The position numbers and the translations under genes are program-made. Shown here in pieces: positions 1 to 13,031 of a stretch of 64,000 bases of DNA (positions within the stretch are counted from its first letter, which is position 1; each line of letters opens with the position of its first letter). The DNA lies in the sequence record NC_041975.1; one strand, given 5' to 3'. Below the pieces are notes generated by a model. That model made no database searches. It saw only the letters and a program-made list of their open reading frames with translations, and was not told the origin of the DNA.

Positions 1-15
1 TAAGGAATAAAGAAC

Positions 16-765
16 ATGACGACGACTTTTCCGAAAGAGATGAATGCAGCTTTCCATCCTGATAACGAGCAAACCACCCAGTTGTGCAAAACGATCCAGC
101 AGATCAGTGGGGTGGAGATCAAACGTGTACATGTGGTGATGGCGATCCACCATTACAAACAAAACGATACGGCACATCAGCCTGACCACATGCTGGCGGT
201 CTTAGCAGAAGCAGCCCACATCATCCAGTCGTTTCCTGACCTGGAGAAATGGCGCACCCAGATCATGTTAGGGTGCCTGTTCCATGACACCCACTGTCAC
301 ATCGATCGGGATATGCACCACCTGCTAGGCGCCGAACATGCTCAAGAGGCATTACTGGAGTATGCGTGTGGTTATGGGATGTCACGTGCGGATGTCTACC
401 TGATCAGTCAGGCCGTACTGGAGCATCGGGCTTCCTGGAAGTACCCGCGTATTAACCCTGTATCCAACGCTGTAGCGTCTGCAGATCGTGGCTACCCTGA
501 TCTAAAGAAATACATCCGTCGTGCTGTACAGTACCGTTACAAGCGTATGGCAGTCATCAACATGAACACCATCATCGATGAGTCGATCGAACACATGGTA
601 GAGAAGTTCGGTGATGGCGGTTATGCCTGGGAAAGCTACCCGACGTATGCAGCGGTGATGCACGGTGATGCGATTCAACAAGTGAAGCAACAACTGCGCA
701 GTAAAGAAGGAAAGGCGCAGCTCAAAGAGTACGCTGAACTCCACTTTGATGAGTGGGTAGAATAA
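16..765 (+). CDS. HD-domain metal-dependent phosphohydrolase
   Basis: H...LFHD...H...EH...AD spacing typical of the HD superfamily; AAGGA RBS. Confidence 0.75.
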   Translation: MTTTFPKEMNAAFHPDNEQTTQLCKTIQQISGVEIKRVHVVMAIHHYKQNDTAHQPDHMLAVLAEAAHIIQSFPDLEKWRTQIMLGCLFHDTHCHIDRDMHHLLGAEHAQEALLEYACGYGMSRADVYLISQAVLEHRASWKYPRINPVSNAVASADRGYPDLKKYIRRAVQYRYKRMAVINMNTIIDESIEHMVEKFGDGGYAWESYPTYAAVMHGDAIQQVKQQLRSKEGKAQLKEYAELHFDEWVE

Positions 766-773
766 GCTACGTG

Positions 774-802
774 GCCGGAGGATTACCTCCGGCTGTTATG
801 CC
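774..802 (+). terminator. Hairpin terminator with TTATGCC tail
   Basis: GCCGGAGG-atta-CCTCCGGC then TGTTATGCC and a T-rich run. Confidence 0.8.
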
Positions 803-925
803 TGTTCTTTCTTCTTTGTAATTCTCAACACATTCGGTCTTTGTTATACAAAGGCTATAATCTTTGTCCCGAGCTAAGGGTAACGTGAACAGTTATGCTG
901 GCTTACTTTTTAAAGGTATCTTTTC

Positions 926-1456
926 ATGGATGGTTTATTTAATCTCTCCTCATGGCAATCGCTTTTACTTGTGGTAGTTGTACTCCTGCTGTGGGCGTAT
1001 TACCAACGACTTCAACACCTGCGTCGTAAGTATCATCGCCGTAATGAACGCATGATGGCGCAGAGCGTGGTCATGACATCCCGGCTGTTACTGAGTACCT
1101 TCTCGGAGATTGTGGAACGCGCTAAAGAGGAGGACATCTACCAGCGTGATCCTAACTCCCCGATTGCGGCAGACCGGGCCAGTGCGATGGCCTGCTCCTC
1201 CATCTTCAGTGGGTTGTATAACCTGGTTGTGGTGCCCGTCACCACCCTTGATCCGGTGTTCAACGATTTATTGATTACCGGTACTGAGCGGGAAGATGTT
1301 GAGGAAGGGGTCTTTGTGTCGTTTTATTTGGGTGAACAGCGTAATGATGTGGTTAGGCATTTTATACCCGACCGGTCGTTACAGGCCTTTATCACCCAAA
1401 CGCGTGCCTTCAGTGCTTACCTGCGACAGGCTGCGAATACAAAACCACCACAATGA
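926..1456 (+). CDS. N-terminally membrane-anchored hypothetical protein (paralogue family with 1465 and 5542)
   Basis: N-terminal hydrophobic helix followed by a basic stop-transfer patch. Confidence 0.75.
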   Translation: MDGLFNLSSWQSLLLVVVVLLLWAYYQRLQHLRRKYHRRNERMMAQSVVMTSRLLLSTFSEIVERAKEEDIYQRDPNSPIAADRASAMACSSIFSGLYNLVVVPVTTLDPVFNDLLITGTEREDVEEGVFVSFYLGEQRNDVVRHFIPDRSLQAFITQTRAFSAYLRQAANTKPPQ

Positions 1457-1464
1457 GGTGACAC

Positions 1465-1995
1465 ATGACCAATTATGGTTTTCTGCTGAACACAGTACTT
1501 CTGGCTTTTCTTATTTGGTTTGGTTACCGACTGCACACGTTGGTAAACAACAGCGAGAAAGCCACCCTCGCCGCTGATCATAACGCCAAGCTGCGCTTCC
1601 TGACCTATGCAGCCCGGCAGATAATGAGTGACTTGTATACGTCGCTCAATCTTCCGACGCTCACCGGGTGTGCGAAGATGTATCTACGCGATGACGGCAA
1701 GCTTGATAATATTGAAGTCATTATGCGACTCTTCATGAAAACCCATAATGAGATTATTACCAAGCTCTCCGAGGGATTGGTGTCGGATCATTTGAAGATC
1801 ACCGATGTTAAAGTTACCCATGATCTGGTGACCAACGAAGTGCTCATCACACTCTTGTATCCGAATAAAGTCACTGACATCCTGGTCTTCCATCATAACC
1901 ACCTGGCGCAGGCGATCTACCAACTGGATCGATTGCAACATCGGCTCTCAACGTTCCACAAAGCGGTGCCGAACCGCGACCTGTACCAACTCTAA
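1465..1995 (+). CDS. N-terminally membrane-anchored hypothetical protein
   Basis: GAGGTG RBS; same architecture and length (176 aa) as the 926 ORF. Confidence 0.75.
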   Translation: MTNYGFLLNTVLLAFLIWFGYRLHTLVNNSEKATLAADHNAKLRFLTYAARQIMSDLYTSLNLPTLTGCAKMYLRDDGKLDNIEVIMRLFMKTHNEIITKLSEGLVSDHLKITDVKVTHDLVTNEVLITLLYPNKVTDILVFHHNHLAQAIYQLDRLQHRLSTFHKAVPNRDLYQL

Positions 1996-1998
1996 ACC

Positions 1999-2027
1999 AA
2001 GGGAGGGCTTCGGCTCTCCCTTATGCC
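1999..2027 (+). terminator. UUCG hairpin terminator with TTATGCC tail
   Basis: AAGGGAGGG-cttcgg-CTCTCCCTT-ATGCC. Confidence 0.8.
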
Positions 2028-2115
2028 ATCCGTTCTTCTTTTTTGGTTATTACTATGAATTGCAAGATTCACCACGTAGTTCGTTTCACTTATTAACCCC
2101 TAAAGAGGAATAGTC

Positions 2116-4038
2116 ATGACAGATAGCACTACAGCGCAGAGCCAGACCGTGACGTTAGACCAAGTCATCGCGTCAGGCGGCCAGATTGTCTTCCTGGACA
2201 ATGGGCAACTGAAAAGCTTTCCTGTCTCTCAGATCACTGACTTACTGAAAAGCGGCATGTCTACTGACGTGTTGGGTCAGGCTGATTCTCTGAGTATGTT
2301 TGGTCAAGTGGAGTCGTTCGAGGCTCTACGTAAGCTTAAGCCACAGAAAGAAGGTGCACGCATCTCTCTTCGTGGCTGGAACAAAGGCAGTTGTCTGGGT
2401 GGCGGTGAGTTCATTGGTCATCTCGTCACCAAAGATCTTAAAGCCCGTCCAGATGATGGCGGTATGATTGCAGCCGGCAGCGGGTTCTTCTGGGAACGTG
2501 TGTGCTCAGATTGCGGGCAAATGAATGTCACTCACTTCGGTGCGCTTCCTGGCGCAACTGCAGCGACTGATTGCGTGCCAGCAATGACCGCCATGCTGAA
2601 CTGGAGTAATGCCAACGCTGTTGGTTTAGGAATTCAATTCCCAGCCGGTACTTTCTTCGCTTCCAGTTTAAAGTTCACCAAAGAGATCGGGTATTTCCGT
2701 ATCGCCGGTAACCACATCAACTTTGGTTATTTTGCTAACACGGTATTGGTGAGTGACGCTACTGAAAACTTTATGTTGGATGTTGCGGCCCGTCGGGTCG
2801 AGTTGGCAAACATCATCTTCCGCGGTGTGAGTACTACTGAGAAGCCGAATAAGAAAGGGATCTTTAATAACATCGTCATTGGTGGTCAGTACTTCAACAT
2901 GACCTGTGTGCGGTTTGAGAAAATCGGCGGGACCTGTGTTAATCTGATCGATACTCTCGATACCAAGATGACACAATGGTACGCGTCACAATGTACTGGT
3001 GATGTGATCGTTAACAAATGGTCCGATCGTCAGGCAGGTGGCTGGAACCATACCACTGCTGTTGAAATGACCAACTTTAACATCCAGAAGTGTGTTGGTG
3101 GTAAAGTGTTTGACATGCAGCGCTGCGCTCAGTCGTTTATCACTAATGGCTGGATCGAGCACTGTGATGATCCAGGCGACCTGTCTAATGGTCAATGGAC
3201 GGTAAATGGCCTGAGTATCGAAGATTGTAAGAAACCATTAAAGGCCTCTTACGCTCGCTTTATTGAGATCCAGCGTAACCTGCAGTCCGGGTCACGGATC
3301 GACTACTCCATTGACCCAGAGCTCGAAGAGTGGCTGAGTGAATGGGAACGCGGTCGTCTGGATATCGCCAACCACGGCATCTTCATCGACGGTACCTTAG
3401 AACCGGGTACGATCATGTCTCGCAACAAGCTGAGCAACAGCAGCGACAAAGCGAAATGGTTCCGGGTCGGTACCTGGTACAGTCCATCTGAAGGCGATTC
3501 CATTGACATCAACCTGGTTGGTACCGGTAACTTCCTGTCGGTCGCACCAAAGCTTGATGATATCGATGGTGTACGTCAAGGTGGCGGTAACACCCTGATC
3601 CGTGTGCAGTTGAAGAAAGACTCCGTAGGTGCGACCTTAGAACCACATGGTTCAAGCCCCCTGCAAGCGGCGAAGATTGCCAAAGTCGGTGCCGGTAAGT
3701 TTGTGGTCTACGCCCAGCTGAAACCGTATACCCGTAATGTGATCCCGGTGATTGTTGCAACCGGCGCCACGCACTACGAAGCCGGCGTCTCTTATTACTT
3801 CCGTCCGGCGATTGCCTCGATGAGTGATGAAGAGATCGCAGCAGTGCCGGATGCGGTAGTGATTGCTGAACAGTGGTCGCTCGGTCAAATGGCCGGTGTG
3901 GGCGCCACTAACGAAGGTAACCTGATGCTGAAGAGTAAGATCGTTAACGATCACTTGCAGGTACAGGTCATGGTTAGCCAAGCACAATGGGCGAAACCAG
4001 AACTTCGTTATATCGAGCTGAAGAAAGAAGCCAAGTAA
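2116..4038 (+). CDS. Exopolysaccharide depolymerase / tailspike (pectin-lyase-like beta-helix, AmsF/Dpo-related)
   Basis: N-terminal GQVESFEALR...GGGEF tailspike module; NVTHFGA...GIQFPAG beta-helix start; 640 aa. Confidence 0.7.
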   Translation: MTDSTTAQSQTVTLDQVIASGGQIVFLDNGQLKSFPVSQITDLLKSGMSTDVLGQADSLSMFGQVESFEALRKLKPQKEGARISLRGWNKGSCLGGGEFIGHLVTKDLKARPDDGGMIAAGSGFFWERVCSDCGQMNVTHFGALPGATAATDCVPAMTAMLNWSNANAVGLGIQFPAGTFFASSLKFTKEIGYFRIAGNHINFGYFANTVLVSDATENFMLDVAARRVELANIIFRGVSTTEKPNKKGIFNNIVIGGQYFNMTCVRFEKIGGTCVNLIDTLDTKMTQWYASQCTGDVIVNKWSDRQAGGWNHTTAVEMTNFNIQKCVGGKVFDMQRCAQSFITNGWIEHCDDPGDLSNGQWTVNGLSIEDCKKPLKASYARFIEIQRNLQSGSRIDYSIDPELEEWLSEWERGRLDIANHGIFIDGTLEPGTIMSRNKLSNSSDKAKWFRVGTWYSPSEGDSIDINLVGTGNFLSVAPKLDDIDGVRQGGGNTLIRVQLKKDSVGATLEPHGSSPLQAAKIAKVGAGKFVVYAQLKPYTRNVIPVIVATGATHYEAGVSYYFRPAIASMSDEEIAAVPDAVVIAEQWSLGQMAGVGATNEGNLMLKSKIVNDHLQVQVMVSQAQWAKPELRYIELKKEAK

Positions 4039-6843: not shown

Positions 6844-7425
6844 ATGTCAAAGAAACTCGATACCCGTAAAAGTATGTTTCTGGCCTTGGTGTTACGCCAC
6901 CGTCCTGAAGAGATCGGAATTACCCTGGATGAGAACGGCTGGGCCAAAGTCAGCGAAGTGATCACTGGGTTCACCTTTACCGGGCGTGGGCTCTCATTAC
7001 CTGAGCTTGAGATCATCGTTGAGACGGATGAGAAGAAGCGTTACCAGCTCTCTGACGACAAGTGCTATATCCGCGCTGTGCAGGGGCATTCTCACGAGAG
7101 CGTGATGAACATGCAGCTGGAAGTGGCGACACCGCCAAAGTACTTGTATCACGGCACCCAACAGATCTCCTGTGAATCGATCGAACGACAAGGGATCTTG
7201 CGCCTTAAACGTTTATATGTCCACCTAACGGATGACATCGAAGCGGCTTGGCGCGCAGCAACTCGTAAACGAACAGCCGGTGCAGTCTACCGAATCGACA
7301 CCGAGAAGATGACGCGGATGGGCCATGTGTTCTATCGCGCTGAGAACGGGGTCTGGCTGGCGAAGCGCATTCCTTTCTCAGTCATTGAGATGGTTGATGC
7401 ACATGACGAAGAAACAAGTACCTGA
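6844..7425 (+). CDS. kptA: RNA 2'-phosphotransferase (Tpt1/KptA family)
   Basis: LRHRPEEIGITLDENGW, KKRYQLS...IRAVQGHS, LYHGT, VHLT, FYRAENGVWL motifs. Confidence 0.92.
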   Translation: MSKKLDTRKSMFLALVLRHRPEEIGITLDENGWAKVSEVITGFTFTGRGLSLPELEIIVETDEKKRYQLSDDKCYIRAVQGHSHESVMNMQLEVATPPKYLYHGTQQISCESIERQGILRLKRLYVHLTDDIEAAWRAATRKRTAGAVYRIDTEKMTRMGHVFYRAENGVWLAKRIPFSVIEMVDAHDEETST

Positions 7426-8799: not shown

Positions 8800-8808
8800 A
8801 GGGCAATT

Positions 8809-9087
8809 ATGAGTAAAGGTACTTTGAAAGGCCTTGGTGTGGTGCTGGCGTGTCTTGTGATTGGCGTATTGCTGTTTGTTTTTGCAACCGCTGTTCAAGC
8901 TGCCGATACACCCGTTAACCCCCACTGTGTTGCCATTACTAACGACAGTACAATTACCACCCAGTGTGACGATGGTACCGTGGTCATTACCAACACCGCA
9001 ACCTCGACGGTGATGGTGTGTCATGTAAGTAAAGAAACAAAAGGTCTTCCGCAATGCGTGAAAGACCGGGTTGTCATTTCTAATTAA
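8809..9087 (+). CDS. Secreted/periplasmic small Cys-containing protein
   Basis: Signal-peptide-like N-terminus with AVQA cleavage pattern; four Cys in the mature part. Confidence 0.7.
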
Positions 9088-9110
9088 CGTTATTCTTCGG
9101 AGCTACACAC

Positions 9111-10244
9111 ATGCAGTACAGTACCTTTAATACCAATAAGAACGATCAGATGGCTGAACCGATGTTCCTGGGTCAGTCGGTTAACGTCTCACGTTATGAT
9201 CAGCAGAAGTACCCCGCGTTTGAAAAGCTGATTGAGAAACAACTTTCATTCTTCTGGCGCCCTGAAGAGGTGGATGTTTCGCAAGACCGTATCGACTTCC
9301 AGGGGTTACCGGATCATGAGAAACACATCTTCGTTTCTAACCTGAAATACCAAACCCTGCTGGACTCGATTCAGGGTCGTAGCCCGAACGTGGCCTTGCT
9401 GCCGATCTGTTCTATCCCGGAACTCGAAACCTGGATTGAAACCTGGGCATTCTCTGAAACGATCCACTCGCGCTCATACACCCACATCATCCGTAATATC
9501 TTTACTGACCCCTCCATCGTGTTTGATGACATCGTGACCAACGAACACATCAAAGCGCGTGCTGAGTCCGTCACGGAGTATTACGACCAGCTGATCGAAA
9601 TGACCATGTACCTCAACTTACTGGGTGAAGGCAGCCATGTAATCAATGGTAAGAAAGTCGTGGTGTCGATGCGGGCGATCAAACGTCTGGTCTACCTGTG
9701 CATCGTGTCAGTCAACGTACTGGAAGCCATCCGCTTCTATGTCTCCTTTGCCTGCTCGTTTGCCTTTGCTGAACGTGAGCTGATGGAAGGTAATGCCAAG
9801 ATCATTAAACTGATCGCCCGTGATGAAGCCCTGCATCTGACCGGCACCCAGCACATGATCATGTTAATGAAGTCCGGTGCTGACGATGCTGAGATGGCGG
9901 AAATCGTTAAAGAGTGTGAAGCAGAAACATACGCACTCTTTAAGGACGCTGCAGAGCAGGAGAAAGACTGGGCGAACTATCTGTTCCAGGATGGGTCGAT
10001 GATCGGTCTGAACAAAGAGATCGTGTGTCAGTACATCGAATACATCACCAACATCCGTATTCGCGCCATCGGTTACGATGACATCTACGCCGGTGTCAAA
10101 GCTAACCCAATCCCGTGGATCAACTCCTGGTTGGTTTCTGACAACGTGCAAGTCGCGCCGCAAGAGTCAGAGATTACCTCGTATTTAGTAGGTCAGATCG
10201 ACTCAACTGTCGATGCAGATGCGTTTGATAACTTCGAACTTTAA
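9111..10244 (+). CDS. nrdB: Ribonucleotide reductase class Ia beta subunit
   Basis: [53 protein letters not shown]; close to enterobacterial NrdB. Confidence 0.97.
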
Positions 10245-11125
10245 TACGTGATCAGCTTCACTCACGTAGAGGGCTGATCGCTAGCCCTTTATGGAGAGTG
10301 TATGTCTGAGATAAAAGATAACCCGGATAACTGGAAAGTGATTCCGGGTTACTCACGTTATGAGATCAACGAAGTCGGCGTTGTAAGAAAGATACATAAC
10401 AAGAAGGTGATGAAACAATGGCTGCGTGGTAATTATACCGCCACTGCTATCACTTCTGATAATAAGTCAACTAGTAGAATAGAATCTATTCATATTTTAC
10501 TGTGCCTTACATTTATTGGTCCAAAGCCCTTACCTGAACCTGGGCACAAACTTGTTACCGCTAACCACAAGGACGGTAACAAACTTAACAATGTGAGGTC
10601 TAATGTAGAATGGTTATCCAATTCTGGTAATATTCTGCATGCTTACAAGAACCGGCTAAATAAATCATCACAGCACCTGCGTCTAACCAATGTGGTCTCT
10701 GGTGAAGTTGTCGACCTGCATTCTTACCGCGAATTATCCAAATGGATGGGTAATCCTAACCTGCGCGGAAGAATGGAGTATCTGAAGTATCGTAACAGGC
10801 TTTATCAAGGCCAGTGGCGAATAGAACTTCTTGGCGAATCAGAGAAGTCTTCAGGGTCTCGTACCAGTAAGCAAGTATGCGTAATGGATGTGGCTAAACG
10901 AATTGGATTGAGGGAGGGTGAGTTTGATACTTTCATCTTTAATTCCATGCATGACGCCGCAGCGGCATTAGGCGTAAGTCGCAAAGGTATTGGTCGATCG
11001 ATTAGTACCAAAGGACGCCATGTTGTAAATGGGTACGCTATATCGCTATCATTTGACGATATGGTTAATGTCACTTATGACAAAGCGTATGTGGAGATTA
11101 GTCTTAAATGGGCGAAACTCAGGGG
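10167..11125 (+). mobile_element. Homing-endonuclease cassette inserted in the nrdB 3' end, carrying a replacement C-terminus
   Basis: Flanked by two versions of the last 25 NrdB codons (10167-10244 and 11126-11203); AT-richer codon usage. Confidence 0.8.
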
Positions 11126-11135
11126 TCAGAAGTAA
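10302..11135 (+). CDS. HNH homing endonuclease (NUMOD4-type N-terminus, HNH core, NUMOD1-like C-terminus)
   Basis: WKVIPGYSRYEIN..G, IHILLCLTFIG, NHKDGNKLNNVRSNVEWLSNSGN, FNSMHDAAAALGVSRKGI. Confidence 0.9.
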   Translation: MSEIKDNPDNWKVIPGYSRYEINEVGVVRKIHNKKVMKQWLRGNYTATAITSDNKSTSRIESIHILLCLTFIGPKPLPEPGHKLVTANHKDGNKLNNVRSNVEWLSNSGNILHAYKNRLNKSSQHLRLTNVVSGEVVDLHSYRELSKWMGNPNLRGRMEYLKYRNRLYQGQWRIELLGESEKSSGSRTSKQVCVMDVAKRIGLREGEFDTFIFNSMHDAAAALGVSRKGIGRSISTKGRHVVNGYAISLSFDDMVNVTYDKAYVEISLKWAKLRGQK

Positions 11136-11203
11136 GTTCTTATCTGGTCGGTCAGATCGACTCGAAAGTGGACGCCAACGATTTCGACGATTTCCAACTG
11201 TAA
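11126..11203 (+). pseudogene. nrdB: Stranded original 3' end of nrdB ([25 protein letters not shown])
   Basis: Direct translation; 25 codons plus TAA paralleling the functional NrdB tail. Confidence 0.9.
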
Positions 11204-11210
11204 CTGCTAG

Positions 11211-11234
11211 GCACCCATGCTTCGGTGTGGGTGC
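11211..11234 (+). terminator. UUCG hairpin, probably the original nrdB terminator
   Basis: GCACCCATGC-ttcg-GTGTGGGTGC, 7 nt after the remnant stop codon. Confidence 0.65.
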
Positions 11235-11251
11235 TGTATAAAGGAGGATGT

Positions 11252-11848
11252 ATGGATGTAGGGCAACGCAATGTCCAGATCTCAGATCAGTATGAGATTA
11301 TCGGCATGGCGGGTGTAAACTACCTGCCTTTAAAGAAGTCTTCCTCCGATACATACCGCGTGGTGTTGTGTCGGTTGGATGGGTTAGGGCGTGACAACAC
11401 TAACTTGCATTATGACATCGATGATGCCTTCACTGACCACTACCGCTTTATCACCCAGCAACTCCCCTTTGCCGAATTTGATGGCAGGGATCGTGTCACC
11501 ACACTCATGCAGAACTGGCAAGGCAAAGCCACCACCGAGATCATTGACAATATCTTTAGTTCAATTGATCCCGATGCAGGCGCCTTTACGCTAGAAAGCA
11601 TCAGTGTGGAAAACGGTTACCTTTATGGTGAGGTCAGATTAGCCAATAGCATTGTGGGAACGAATCTCTCCATGATGCTGAACCATCCACGCCCCGATCA
11701 GGCTGCCTTGATCTTTGGGGTCCGCTATCTGTCCGTCAATACCAGGCTTGACGGGCTGCAGTATGCTGACGTCAAGAAGATCTGTGCGTATGACGTGAAT
11801 ATCGTCAGCGAAACCGAATTAACCCAACGTCGTAACGGGGTAAAATAA
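11252..11848 (+). CDS. Prohead-protease-like protein (phiKZ gp175 / T4 gp21 fold), probably inactive
   Basis: AGGAGG RBS; YRVVLCRL..., LYGEV, FGVRY...VKKICAYDV resemble the protease-family pattern; expected catalytic His and Ser absent. Confidence 0.45.
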   Translation: MDVGQRNVQISDQYEIIGMAGVNYLPLKKSSSDTYRVVLCRLDGLGRDNTNLHYDIDDAFTDHYRFITQQLPFAEFDGRDRVTTLMQNWQGKATTEIIDNIFSSIDPDAGAFTLESISVENGYLYGEVRLANSIVGTNLSMMLNHPRPDQAALIFGVRYLSVNTRLDGLQYADVKKICAYDVNIVSETELTQRRNGVK

Positions 11849-11882
11849 TGAACCGTTTAAAAGGTGCTGTGAGAGCCTATAA

Positions 11883-12500
11883 ATGAAAAGAACAAAAAAT
11901 ATAAAGCTTGATCGTTTTCGTAAGGCATGGAAATTTAAGAAGGTTTCGCTGGCATTGATGGTGGTAACCGGATCGTTTTACCTGGTGGCGTGCGATGAGC
12001 CGCGTGATCAGCAAGTGCAGATGTATCAGAATGCGGATGACTGTAGTCGAGCTCGCCCGCAAGACAAGCAGCGCTGTTCTGATGCGTACAATAATGCCCT
12101 GCGTGAATCTGAGCGTACTGCCCCGCGTTACGGATCGAAAGGAGATTGTGATGCCGAGTTTGGCTCTGACAATTGTTACCAATCCACGGCCCATAGCTCG
12201 ACCTGGATGCCGTATATGGGCGGATACATGTACGGGCGCAACGGGAGTTACGCACAGCCGTTGTATTCCTCACGGGTAATGTCAAGTCCTGCCTATCACC
12301 GCTACGTCGATGCTGGCGGGCATAGCTACGGCAGTGCCATCTCTGGCCGCTCGATTAATACCACACGCAGCGCGCTAGCACCCAAGCCTGCAGTCACTTC
12401 AACCATTACCCGTGGCGGATTCGGTGCAAGTGTGGCACATATGAGTAGTTCCCATTCTTCGTCCGGTCACAGCAGTGGCGGACATTCATCTGGCGGTTAA
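11883..12500 (+). CDS. ygiB: YgiB/DUF1190-family lipoprotein
   Basis: MKRTKNIK...LVAC lipobox; MYQNADDC, AYNNALRESERTAPRY, WMPYMGGYM, SPAYHRYVDA, APKPAVTSTITRGGFG as in E. coli YgiB. Confidence 0.9.
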   Translation: MKRTKNIKLDRFRKAWKFKKVSLALMVVTGSFYLVACDEPRDQQVQMYQNADDCSRARPQDKQRCSDAYNNALRESERTAPRYGSKGDCDAEFGSDNCYQSTAHSSTWMPYMGGYMYGRNGSYAQPLYSSRVMSSPAYHRYVDAGGHSYGSAISGRSINTTRSALAPKPAVTSTITRGGFGASVAHMSSSHSSSGHSSGGHSSGG

Positions 12501-12509
12501 GGAACAGTA

Positions 12510-13031
12510 ATGCAAATCCCCGGTATGCCAACTTCATTTGAAGAGCTGTGCAGTATCATTGTTAAACTCGGGTTAGTTGACGCCTCGGTTGAAAAGACCA
12601 CTGAGCTTTTGTGGCAGTCTGTCGAAGACCACGGCTACACCCATCGGTGGGATGATCCGGATCAAGAGATGACGTCAACAGAACGTTGGTTCAGCCGAGC
12701 AGAAGAGTTGAAAATGACGTTCCATGGTGATGTTGTCGCCATGCTGGTTGATTGGTCTATTATGACGGGTCGTATGGATCAGTACCATAATGACATTGAT
12801 TATAAGCAACATTGTCGCAACTGGTTGGCTTCGCAGATCAGTGTTAAGCTACAGCTCGATGATGAAGGCGTCACTGAAACAACCCTGCATCCACCAACCT
12901 ATCGCTACCTTCAAGGCGGCAAGATCTTTGTCATCAATGCAGCCACTTCTGGTAACGGCGGCGGCATCAACTATTACACCATGTCATTAGAGGAGTACGT
13001 GAAGTACATTAAAACGCAACCGGTTATTTAA
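12510..13031 (+). CDS. Hypothetical protein
   Basis: AAGGA RBS; 173 aa. Confidence 0.7.
   Translation: MQIPGMPTSFEELCSIIVKLGLVDASVEKTTELLWQSVEDHGYTHRWDDPDQEMTSTERWFSRAEELKMTFHGDVVAMLVDWSIMTGRMDQYHNDIDYKQHCRNWLASQISVKLQLDDEGVTETTLHPPTYRYLQGGKIFVINAATSGNGGGINYYTMSLEEYVKYIKTQPVI

Follow-up and report, generated by a model that had tools for sequence, protein, structure and literature searches.

Duplicated nrdB gene end in an Agricanvirus genome is best explained by one-sided homing of a free-standing HNH gene

We have analyzed a 64,000-nucleotide (nt) stretch of DNA from sequence record NC_041975.1 (hereafter the window), in which the gene for the class Ia ribonucleotide reductase beta subunit (nrdB) is followed by a free-standing HNH homing endonuclease gene and then by a second version of the last 25 codons of nrdB. 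Positions 9000-11900 of the window match at 100% to Erwinia phage vB_EamM_Special G (KU886222), a 273-kb jumbo phage of the genus Agricanvirus. The arrangement is best explained as the product of one-sided homing, in which a free-standing I-HmuI-like HNH gene entered an Agricanvirus genome resembling that of phage Ea35-70, and we consider this account probable on the basis of sequence comparisons. Under this interpretation, the gene end that nrdB now uses came with the HNH gene, and the stranded copy is what remains of the original one.

The two tail copies are recognizable at 10167-10244 and 11126-11203, where a first-pass annotation made by a model from the DNA letters had placed them, each with 25 codons and a stop. 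They are identical at 53 of 78 nt (68%) and at 18 of 25 residues. Eighteen codons differ between them, 11 synonymously and 7 nonsynonymously, and both copies contain the same exact 14-nt core. When the codons of the tail core (Y-L-V-G-Q-I-D-S) were written as a degenerate pattern, only these two sites were found in the 64 kb, and none in 100 shuffles. A direct-repeat search with a 10-nt seed did not report the pair, and therefore the duplication is best seen at the codon level. The stop codon of the HNH gene (11133-11135) falls within the second copy, in a different frame. As the first-pass annotation had also noted, the upstream tail is AT-richer than its counterpart and in this respect resembles the HNH gene (G+C of 0.40 and 0.42, versus 0.45 for the stranded tail and 0.50 for the nrdB body), and a hairpin with a UUCG loop follows the stranded copy, at 11210-11235 (about -18 kcal/mol, z = -2.0).

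The closest relative that lacks the HNH gene, Ea35-70, reveals which copy is original. Its flanks are ~97% identical to those of the window and no HNH gene is present at its nrdB locus, nor at that of AH06. The first-pass annotation had predicted that the nrdB of such a relative would end in the downstream version. This is indeed how the Ea35-70 gene ends, and the same hairpin follows directly. From position 11129 onward, the stranded copy matches the Ea35-70 tail at 74 of 75 nt, and from the Tyr codon onward it is identical to the tail of Erwinia phage Deimos-Minion. Identity of the upstream tail to Ea35-70 is only ~70-75%, and BLAST homology to that genome ends within the upstream tail and picks up again at 11129. 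The UUCG hairpin is likewise located directly 3' of the nrdB stop codon in Ea35-70, in Deimos-Minion and in AH06. The downstream copy is evidently the phage's own native tail, because HNH-less Ea35-70 ends nrdB with that version and the same hairpin, and the upstream copy evidently arrived with the HNH gene. Thus NrdB is chimeric, as had been proposed from the sequence of this one genome, with its last 25 or more residues being foreign. The join had been guessed to lie near CAA GAG/TCA, which is close to what we observe: the foreign tract starts at about 10152-10166 and native sequence resumes at 11126-11129.

Five sequenced phages carry the insertion (Special G, Simmy50, RAY, Mortimer and Bosolaphorus), all with the same layout, no insertions or deletions, and intact nrdB and HNH open reading frames (ORFs). 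An assembly artefact is excluded because these five carriers have the same layout. The HNH gene is thus present in five genomes and missing from Ea35-70 at one site among near-identical genomes. Within the 25 codons of the functional tail, all differences in the four sister isolates are synonymous, whereas the stranded copy has 0-2 differences between isolates. Synonymous-only change fits the notion that the upstream tail is the copy in use.

The two junctions of the insertion behave differently. All five isolates share the same right junction, as do two metagenomic contigs, L087 and L088. The left end of the foreign tract varies, and is found at ~10166 in Simmy50, at ~10157 in Special G and at ~10152 in RAY, Mortimer and Bosolaphorus, with L087 having another pattern. 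Relative to the position equivalent to the right junction, these left end points are 1-17 nt upstream. A foreign, co-converted flanking tract with variable end points therefore adjoins the HNH gene, which is a hallmark of homing. The positions of the junctions fit a putative break in the HNH-less allele at or near the right-junction position. At that junction, the 3' end of the HNH gene, with its last codons and stop, is similar to the stop region of a related HNH gene (on contig L089, described below) as well as to the native tail, giving a microhomology of 6/7 nt. L087 offers a further observation on cassette variants. When its positions 1-3570 are compared with window positions 9434-13000, the cassette tail is 76% identical and the first two-thirds of the HNH gene 75-87% identical, within DNA that is otherwise 97-99% identical; identity to Special G is ~97% in the spacer and in the final third of the HNH gene. 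This pattern suggests a possible exchange between cassette variants in which tail and nuclease change together.

A likely source of the foreign segment is indicated by relatives of the HNH protein, of which a large protein collection contains only a handful of full length. The group comprises P0002-P0005, encoded on contigs L087-L093, and the proteins of Klebsiella phage N1M2 and the Deimos-Minion clade. All of the full-length relatives (41-86% identity) whose context was examined adjoin nrdB, and those from the protein collection follow it directly; P0006, on a 1-kb contig, was left out. The metagenomic phage contig L089 is collinear with window positions 9112-11136 at 80%, and its HNH protein is 82% identical. 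The tail of its nrdB agrees with the functional tail of Special G at 23 of 25 residues and uses the same unusual TTA and GTA codons; of the tails compared, those of L089 and AH06 are closest to the functional one. The spacer hairpin between nrdB and the HNH gene is nearly identical in L087 and L089 and is absent in Ea35-70, where the native hairpin directly follows nrdB. L089 has no second tail, and its next gene begins 9 nt past the HNH stop codon. The more distant L090 (45% identity) and L091-L093 (41%) also have nrdB and then the HNH gene with no tail duplication.

The ordinary state of the element is, by these comparisons, a free-standing gene in the space behind nrdB, because L089, L090 and L091-L093 have it there without a duplication. 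On the 3' side of the HNH gene, L089 and Special G have only a 92-nt stretch in common, at 73%; a donor of the L089 type would therefore have had good homology to the left of the HNH gene but hardly any to the right. These loci revise two earlier claims. The upstream tail had been taken for a recoded copy, but it is instead the donor's own nrdB end, with tail, spacer and HNH gene all collinear to L089. The HNH gene had been described as invading a conserved coding site without splicing; no intron signal is found, in agreement with the second part of that claim, but the ordinary home of the gene, as in L089, is behind nrdB.

Other searches for related loci were unproductive. Scans of IMG/VR and of Joint Genome Institute (JGI) metagenomes with HNH alignments gave only distant matches to the N-terminal domain, and none of the 89 loci has nrdB nearby; these loci are therefore uninformative on the nrdB-linked HNH subfamily. 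A scan of IMG/VR for nrdB tails gave at least 113 loci, and among the matches listed none is followed by this HNH gene or by a second tail; they served solely as a background for codon usage. In N1M2 (L004), L085, L090 and L091, the genes that come after the HNH gene gave no Pfam match.

We propose the following sequence of events. The enzyme would nick or cut an HNH-less nrdB allele in the codons just before the conserved S-Y-L-V-G-Q-I-D stretch. At the left end, homologous repair within nrdB would copy the donor tail, the hairpin and the HNH gene, whereas the right end, which lacks homology, would be joined at a short microhomology that the HNH stop region shares with the native tail. All sequence right of the break would therefore be retained, leaving the native tail and its hairpin as a dead copy, and the new NrdB would use the donor tail under purifying selection. 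Once formed, the block could spread between Agricanvirus genomes through ordinary homologous repair, in which the stranded tail would provide the homology on the right. The duplication looks like a by-product of one-sided repair rather than a device that the element needs. The features of the locus are collected in Table 1.

Table 1. Features of the nrdB-HNH locus (positions are those of the window).
Feature	Position	Strand	Remarks
nrdB ORF	9111-10244	+	377 amino acids, class Ia ribonucleotide reductase beta subunit
nrdB body, native to the Agricanvirus lineage	9111-10152	+	93-100% identity per 60-nt window to Ea35-70
Foreign, donor-derived nrdB 3' end (functional tail 10167-10244 and a few preceding codons)	10153-10244	+
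Spacer carried by the cassette, with hairpin 10259-10300	10245-10301	+	57 nt
Free-standing I-HmuI-like HNH homing endonuclease gene	10302-11135	+	277 amino acids; stop 11133-11135
Right junction	11126-11136	+	HNH-specific sequence to ~11125; native tail from 11129
Stranded native nrdB tail, 25 codons and stop, joined to no nrdB frame	11126-11203	+
Native post-nrdB hairpin, UUCG loop	11210-11235	+	RNA fold; kept in relatives
gp93, downstream neighbor (phrog_11672), right flank of the insertion	11252-11848	+	Annotation, PHROG match, 95-99% identity to Ea35-70

A 31-residue ORF at 11108-11203, preceded at a distance of 11 nt by a weak GGAG, consists of six new residues and the stranded tail. Gene calls on L087 and L088 include this ORF, and it carries one stop codon in RAY; a function for it was set aside on account of that stop. 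Further upstream, a few genes before nrdB, an annotated RNA 2'-phosphotransferase gene is present at 6844-7425, and the same gene occurs in AH06.

The chimeric nrdB ORF is of full length. NrdB scores 179.6 bits against Pfam Ribonuc_red_sm (cut-off 33.6), and its residues 1-377 align end to end with residues 1-376 of Escherichia coli NrdB (PDB 7ai8_A, E 7e-201). Tyr358 aligns with Tyr357 of that structure, which is the radical-transfer residue Y356 in mature-protein numbering. The C-terminal tail of NrdB docks the beta subunit on the large subunit (alpha) and carries the radical-transfer Tyr, and it is in this docking peptide that the functional and native versions differ at 7 of 25 positions. 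No homologue of nrdA, the partner gene, was found in the 64-kb window. The spacer hairpin that precedes the HNH gene is unusually stable (-24.7 kcal/mol, z = -3.6, with 0 of 200 shuffles as good), and the ribosome-binding site of the HNH gene, GGAGAG at 10293-10298, is located within its 3' arm. A strong hairpin or terminator 3' of nrdB is also present in N1M2, L090 and L091. Hairpins that hide a ribosome-binding site are a known means of control for phage homing endonuclease genes (PMC2988022).

When a profile built from the HNH protein and two relatives was compared with solved structures, the sole match was I-HmuI (1u3e, E 6.7e-7), over residues 9-130 and through the HNH motif. The PHROG database returns HNH endonuclease families, the best being phrog_59 (E 6e-32). 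The motif H-K-D-G-N-K...N...E-W is invariant in alignments of the relatives, and motif and ORF are intact in all seven sequenced copies. I-HmuI, from Bacillus phage SPO1, likewise has an N-terminal strand domain followed by an HNH motif, but it is a 174-residue, intron-encoded protein, whereas the Special G protein has 277 residues and is free-standing. The C-terminal half of the latter matches no recognized family in Pfam or in a model-based fold search. I-HmuI and the Mob proteins of phage T4 are nicking enzymes (PMC2988022), and by analogy the Special G enzyme may also nick its target.

The codons at the presumed target offer a hint as to how a carrier might avoid self-cleavage. The Leu codon of S-Y-L is TTA or CTT in all six functional tails that are linked to an HNH gene, and CTG in all eight tails that are HNH-less or stranded. 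Within the same nrdB genes, CTG accounts for 42-68% of Leu codons, and TTA and CTT together for 14-31%. A sample of 85 HNH-less tails from IMG/VR has CTG in 47, CTC in 26, CTT in 5, TTG in 4, TTA in 2 and CTA in 1. The synonymous replacement of CTG by TTA or CTT may add to immunity against the enzyme. That the functional tail is cleavage-resistant, as first proposed, is suggestive at most; its sole support is this codon association in a small sample.

Several observations weigh against the proposed homing account. The Pfam scores of the HNH protein are below the curated cut-offs (HNH_3 17.4 bits vs 24.8; NUMOD4 18.7 vs 23.4), and its family membership therefore rests on the PDB and PHROG matches. 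A structure model computed from six sequences is poor, with a mean predicted local distance difference test score (pLDDT) of 62 and values <50 for residues 38-123, the catalytic region. The best fold match of this poor model is again 1u3e, but weakly (E 0.013, template-modeling (TM) score 0.17-0.24). The enzyme could be inactive today. The exact donor is in no collection searched, the closest HNH protein being the 82% identical one of L089, the junction is not resolvable to the base, and the microhomology on the right extends to only 6/7 nt. With regard to the codon association, TTA or CTT also occurs in 7 of the 85 HNH-less IMG/VR tails, each side of the association represents only about four independent lineages, and CTG is still present in the stranded copy. 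A target located wholly to the right of the junction would leave a cleavable site in the phage.

The tail of nrdB has been affected in similar ways elsewhere. Of 137 phage records in which a query with the 25-residue tail finds such a sequence, only those of the Special G clade and of Klebsiella phage N1M2 have two sites per genome. In N1M2, whose HNH protein is 46% identical, the order is again nrdB with its tail, a hairpin, the HNH gene and a second tail, and it is the second copy and the DNA after it that match the HNH-less relatives Yubaba and Sureiya, whereas the first copy and the hairpin do not. At the right junction of N1M2, an HNH gene without its last few codons runs in frame into 22 tail codons; the duplication is an independent event because this junction differs from that of Special G. 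As a result, the predicted N1M2 nuclease (L004 2498-3295) ends in the peptide that normally docks NrdB on the large subunit. A separate oddity is found in Serratia phage Sureiya (L086 2501-4595), where nrdB is annotated in two pieces around an insert of ~900 nt with a "winged helix-turn-helix" ORF; Rfam group I intron models score only 19-20 bits on this insert (cut-off 50; E about 0.03).

The Deimos-Minion clade (Erwinia phage Deimos-Minion, L002 1604-3590) represents another outcome. There, an HNH paralogue with 42% identity is located upstream of nrdB, and nrdB is wholly foreign (55-95% identity per 60-nt window), although its flanks match Ea35-70 at 98-100%. Native sequence picks up at the Tyr codon of the tail, such that the junctions of Special G, N1M2 and the Deimos-Minion clade are no more than ~12 nt apart. 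In the Deimos-Minion clade, a plain crossover in the best-conserved patch of DNA could also account for the junction. Three allelic states thus occur in one genus: a naive locus, a 3' cassette with a stranded tail, and a 5' paralogue with a wholly replaced nrdB. A published comparison of these phages describes only a "reversed order" of HNH and reductase genes (PMC6690015), a description that the present analysis corrects by revealing two different HNH paralogues and two different invasion products.

We have considered other origins for this arrangement. One is that the cassette is an adapted unit which always carries a replacement tail in order to live in coding sequence, such that the duplication is designed rather than left over from repair. 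The occurrence of the same layout twice, in Agricanvirus and in N1M2, speaks for this idea, as does the apparent spread and recombination of the two-tail block in Agricanvirus, where left ends vary and L087 has a diverged cassette between flanks of 97-99% identity. However, three lineages (L089, L090 and L091-L093) have nrdB and then the HNH gene with no second tail, and in L089 the supposed replacement tail is simply that phage's own gene end. Moreover, the two duplications have different right junctions, with the HNH gene of N1M2 fused in frame to the tail. We therefore regard a purpose-built unit as unlikely, although it is the best of the alternatives.

Alternatively, the HNH gene might be only a passenger, and crossovers in the conserved tail during ordinary recombination of diverged phages might have produced the mosaic with no endonuclease action. 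Between diverged nrdB alleles, DNA is best conserved in the tail core, and in the Deimos-Minion clade the whole foreign nrdB joins native sequence exactly at this core. Yet a homologous crossover in the tail cannot yield a duplication, and the right junction in Special G is non-homologous. The preservation of nuclease motif and ORF in all seven copies, and the association of this HNH subfamily with nrdB in every lineage seen, also do not favor a passenger, and we judge this explanation to be quite improbable.

Far less credible still is the possibility that an intron, other splicing or recoding joins nrdB to the downstream tail as a true exon. The nrdB gene of T4 does have a group I intron with an HNH gene (PMC3653736), and the Sureiya insert with its weak group I intron scores might be seen as another precedent. 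A group I intron with an internal endonuclease of the T4 nrdB type was rejected for the Special G locus: Rfam, introns included, gives no family match in 8800-11900 at E up to 1, and the upstream nrdB ORF is of full length, has its own stop codon and aligns to the last residue of E. coli NrdB. The upstream tail changes only synonymously between isolates, and L089 offers no second tail to which nrdB could be spliced. A split gene of the type described below for Aeromonas phage Aeh1 was rejected as well; the two tails are redundant, each being a copy of the same 25 codons, with no nrdB frame upstream of the second. Equally hard to credit is that the tail was duplicated in place and its upstream copy then diverged, or that Ea35-70 lost the cassette by deletion between the tails, even if the 14-nt core could support such recombination: the upstream copy most resembles tails from other lineages (L089, AH06) and runs directly into a foreign spacer and HNH gene, the tail copies have diverged by 32% versus ~3% in the flanks, and Ea35-70 cannot be a deletion product because its native codons just left of the junction are nowhere in Special G.

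One-sided homing, our preferred explanation, has an experimental precedent. According to the summary in PMC2988022, one-sided homing with illegitimate microhomology junctions was shown for a T4 intron. As that summary describes it, extensive homology was likewise available on one side only, at a site lacking full homology, and the other side was joined at a microhomology. The T4 case was an engineered test with an intron, whereas the Special G locus is a natural, fixed product in field isolates and involves no intron.

In its layout, the locus is the phage counterpart of the mobile ORF elements (mORFs) of fungal mitochondria with a replacement C-terminus, which are known for atp6 of Allomyces macrogynus and for atp6, atp9, cox2 and nad3 of Glomus sp. 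(PMC3630166). Those loci have a gene core, a foreign C-terminus, an endonuclease ORF and the native C-terminus, the same order as found here. There, too, the native copy is nearly identical to that of a sister lacking the ORF, it is the hybrid gene that is used, and the inserted copy has ~64-81% identity at the DNA level and is similar in protein. The fungal elements differ in that they are found in an organelle, encode LAGLIDADG or GIY-YIG enzymes and are often fused in frame, whereas the Special G nuclease is of the HNH type, in a phage, and has an ORF to itself, along with a ribosome-binding site and hairpin of its own. A further difference is that duplication-free relatives of the phage element show that the carried tail is the donor's ordinary gene end.

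Among phages, the element groups with other free-standing HNH genes near those of the reductase, such as the gene for MobE of T4, an enzyme encoded between nrdA and nrdB that makes a strand-specific nick in nrdB of T-even phages (PMC2790892). MobE shares with the Special G enzyme a free-standing HNH gene by the reductase genes, and its target is in the neighboring nrdB, flanking DNA is co-converted, and its expression is held low by RNA structure (PMC2790892, PMC2988022). But mobE is upstream of nrdB, its enzyme acts on the 5' region and causes no duplication, and it belongs to the Mob class (HNH and zinc finger) rather than having the NUMOD4/I-HmuI-like N-terminus found here. The Deimos-Minion clade, with a paralogue 5' of a wholly replaced nrdB, resembles the T4 arrangement more closely. 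In Aeromonas phage Aeh1, as far as the accounts in PMC2988022 and PMC3653736 outline it, mobE is likewise located in a reductase coding region (nrdA) with no intron or intein and with a functional enzyme. In that case nrdA is split into two complementary polypeptides, whereas Special G has a complete gene and a redundant dead tail. Full-text searches of the literature gave no report of such an element duplicating a gene end in a phage, and a survey of phage reductase genes reports none known to be duplicated (PMC3653736).

Taken together, these observations permit a broader reading, which we consider conceivable but doubtful. The NrdB-tail codons might be the dedicated target of a small nrdB-specific HNH subfamily, whose repeated attacks would drive allele replacement at the alpha-docking contact in jumbo phages. 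Immunity would come through synonymous changes such as that of the Leu codon, and the stranded tail would be the right homology arm of a self-contained mobile block. The N1M2 nuclease, itself with an NrdB tail, might even be brought to the large subunit.

Regardless of this broader reading, the locus is a clean natural example of a homing gene entering a genome with one-sided homology, for which the empty site, a donor-type locus and several products have all been sequenced. For annotation, the 31-residue ORF behind the HNH gene should be treated as a gene remnant rather than as a gene. Entry of this kind can alter the end of an essential enzyme with no intron or intein involved. Because the functional tail differs from the native one at 7 of the 25 positions of the docking peptide, the locus is also a natural experiment on how much change the contact between NrdB and the large subunit tolerates.

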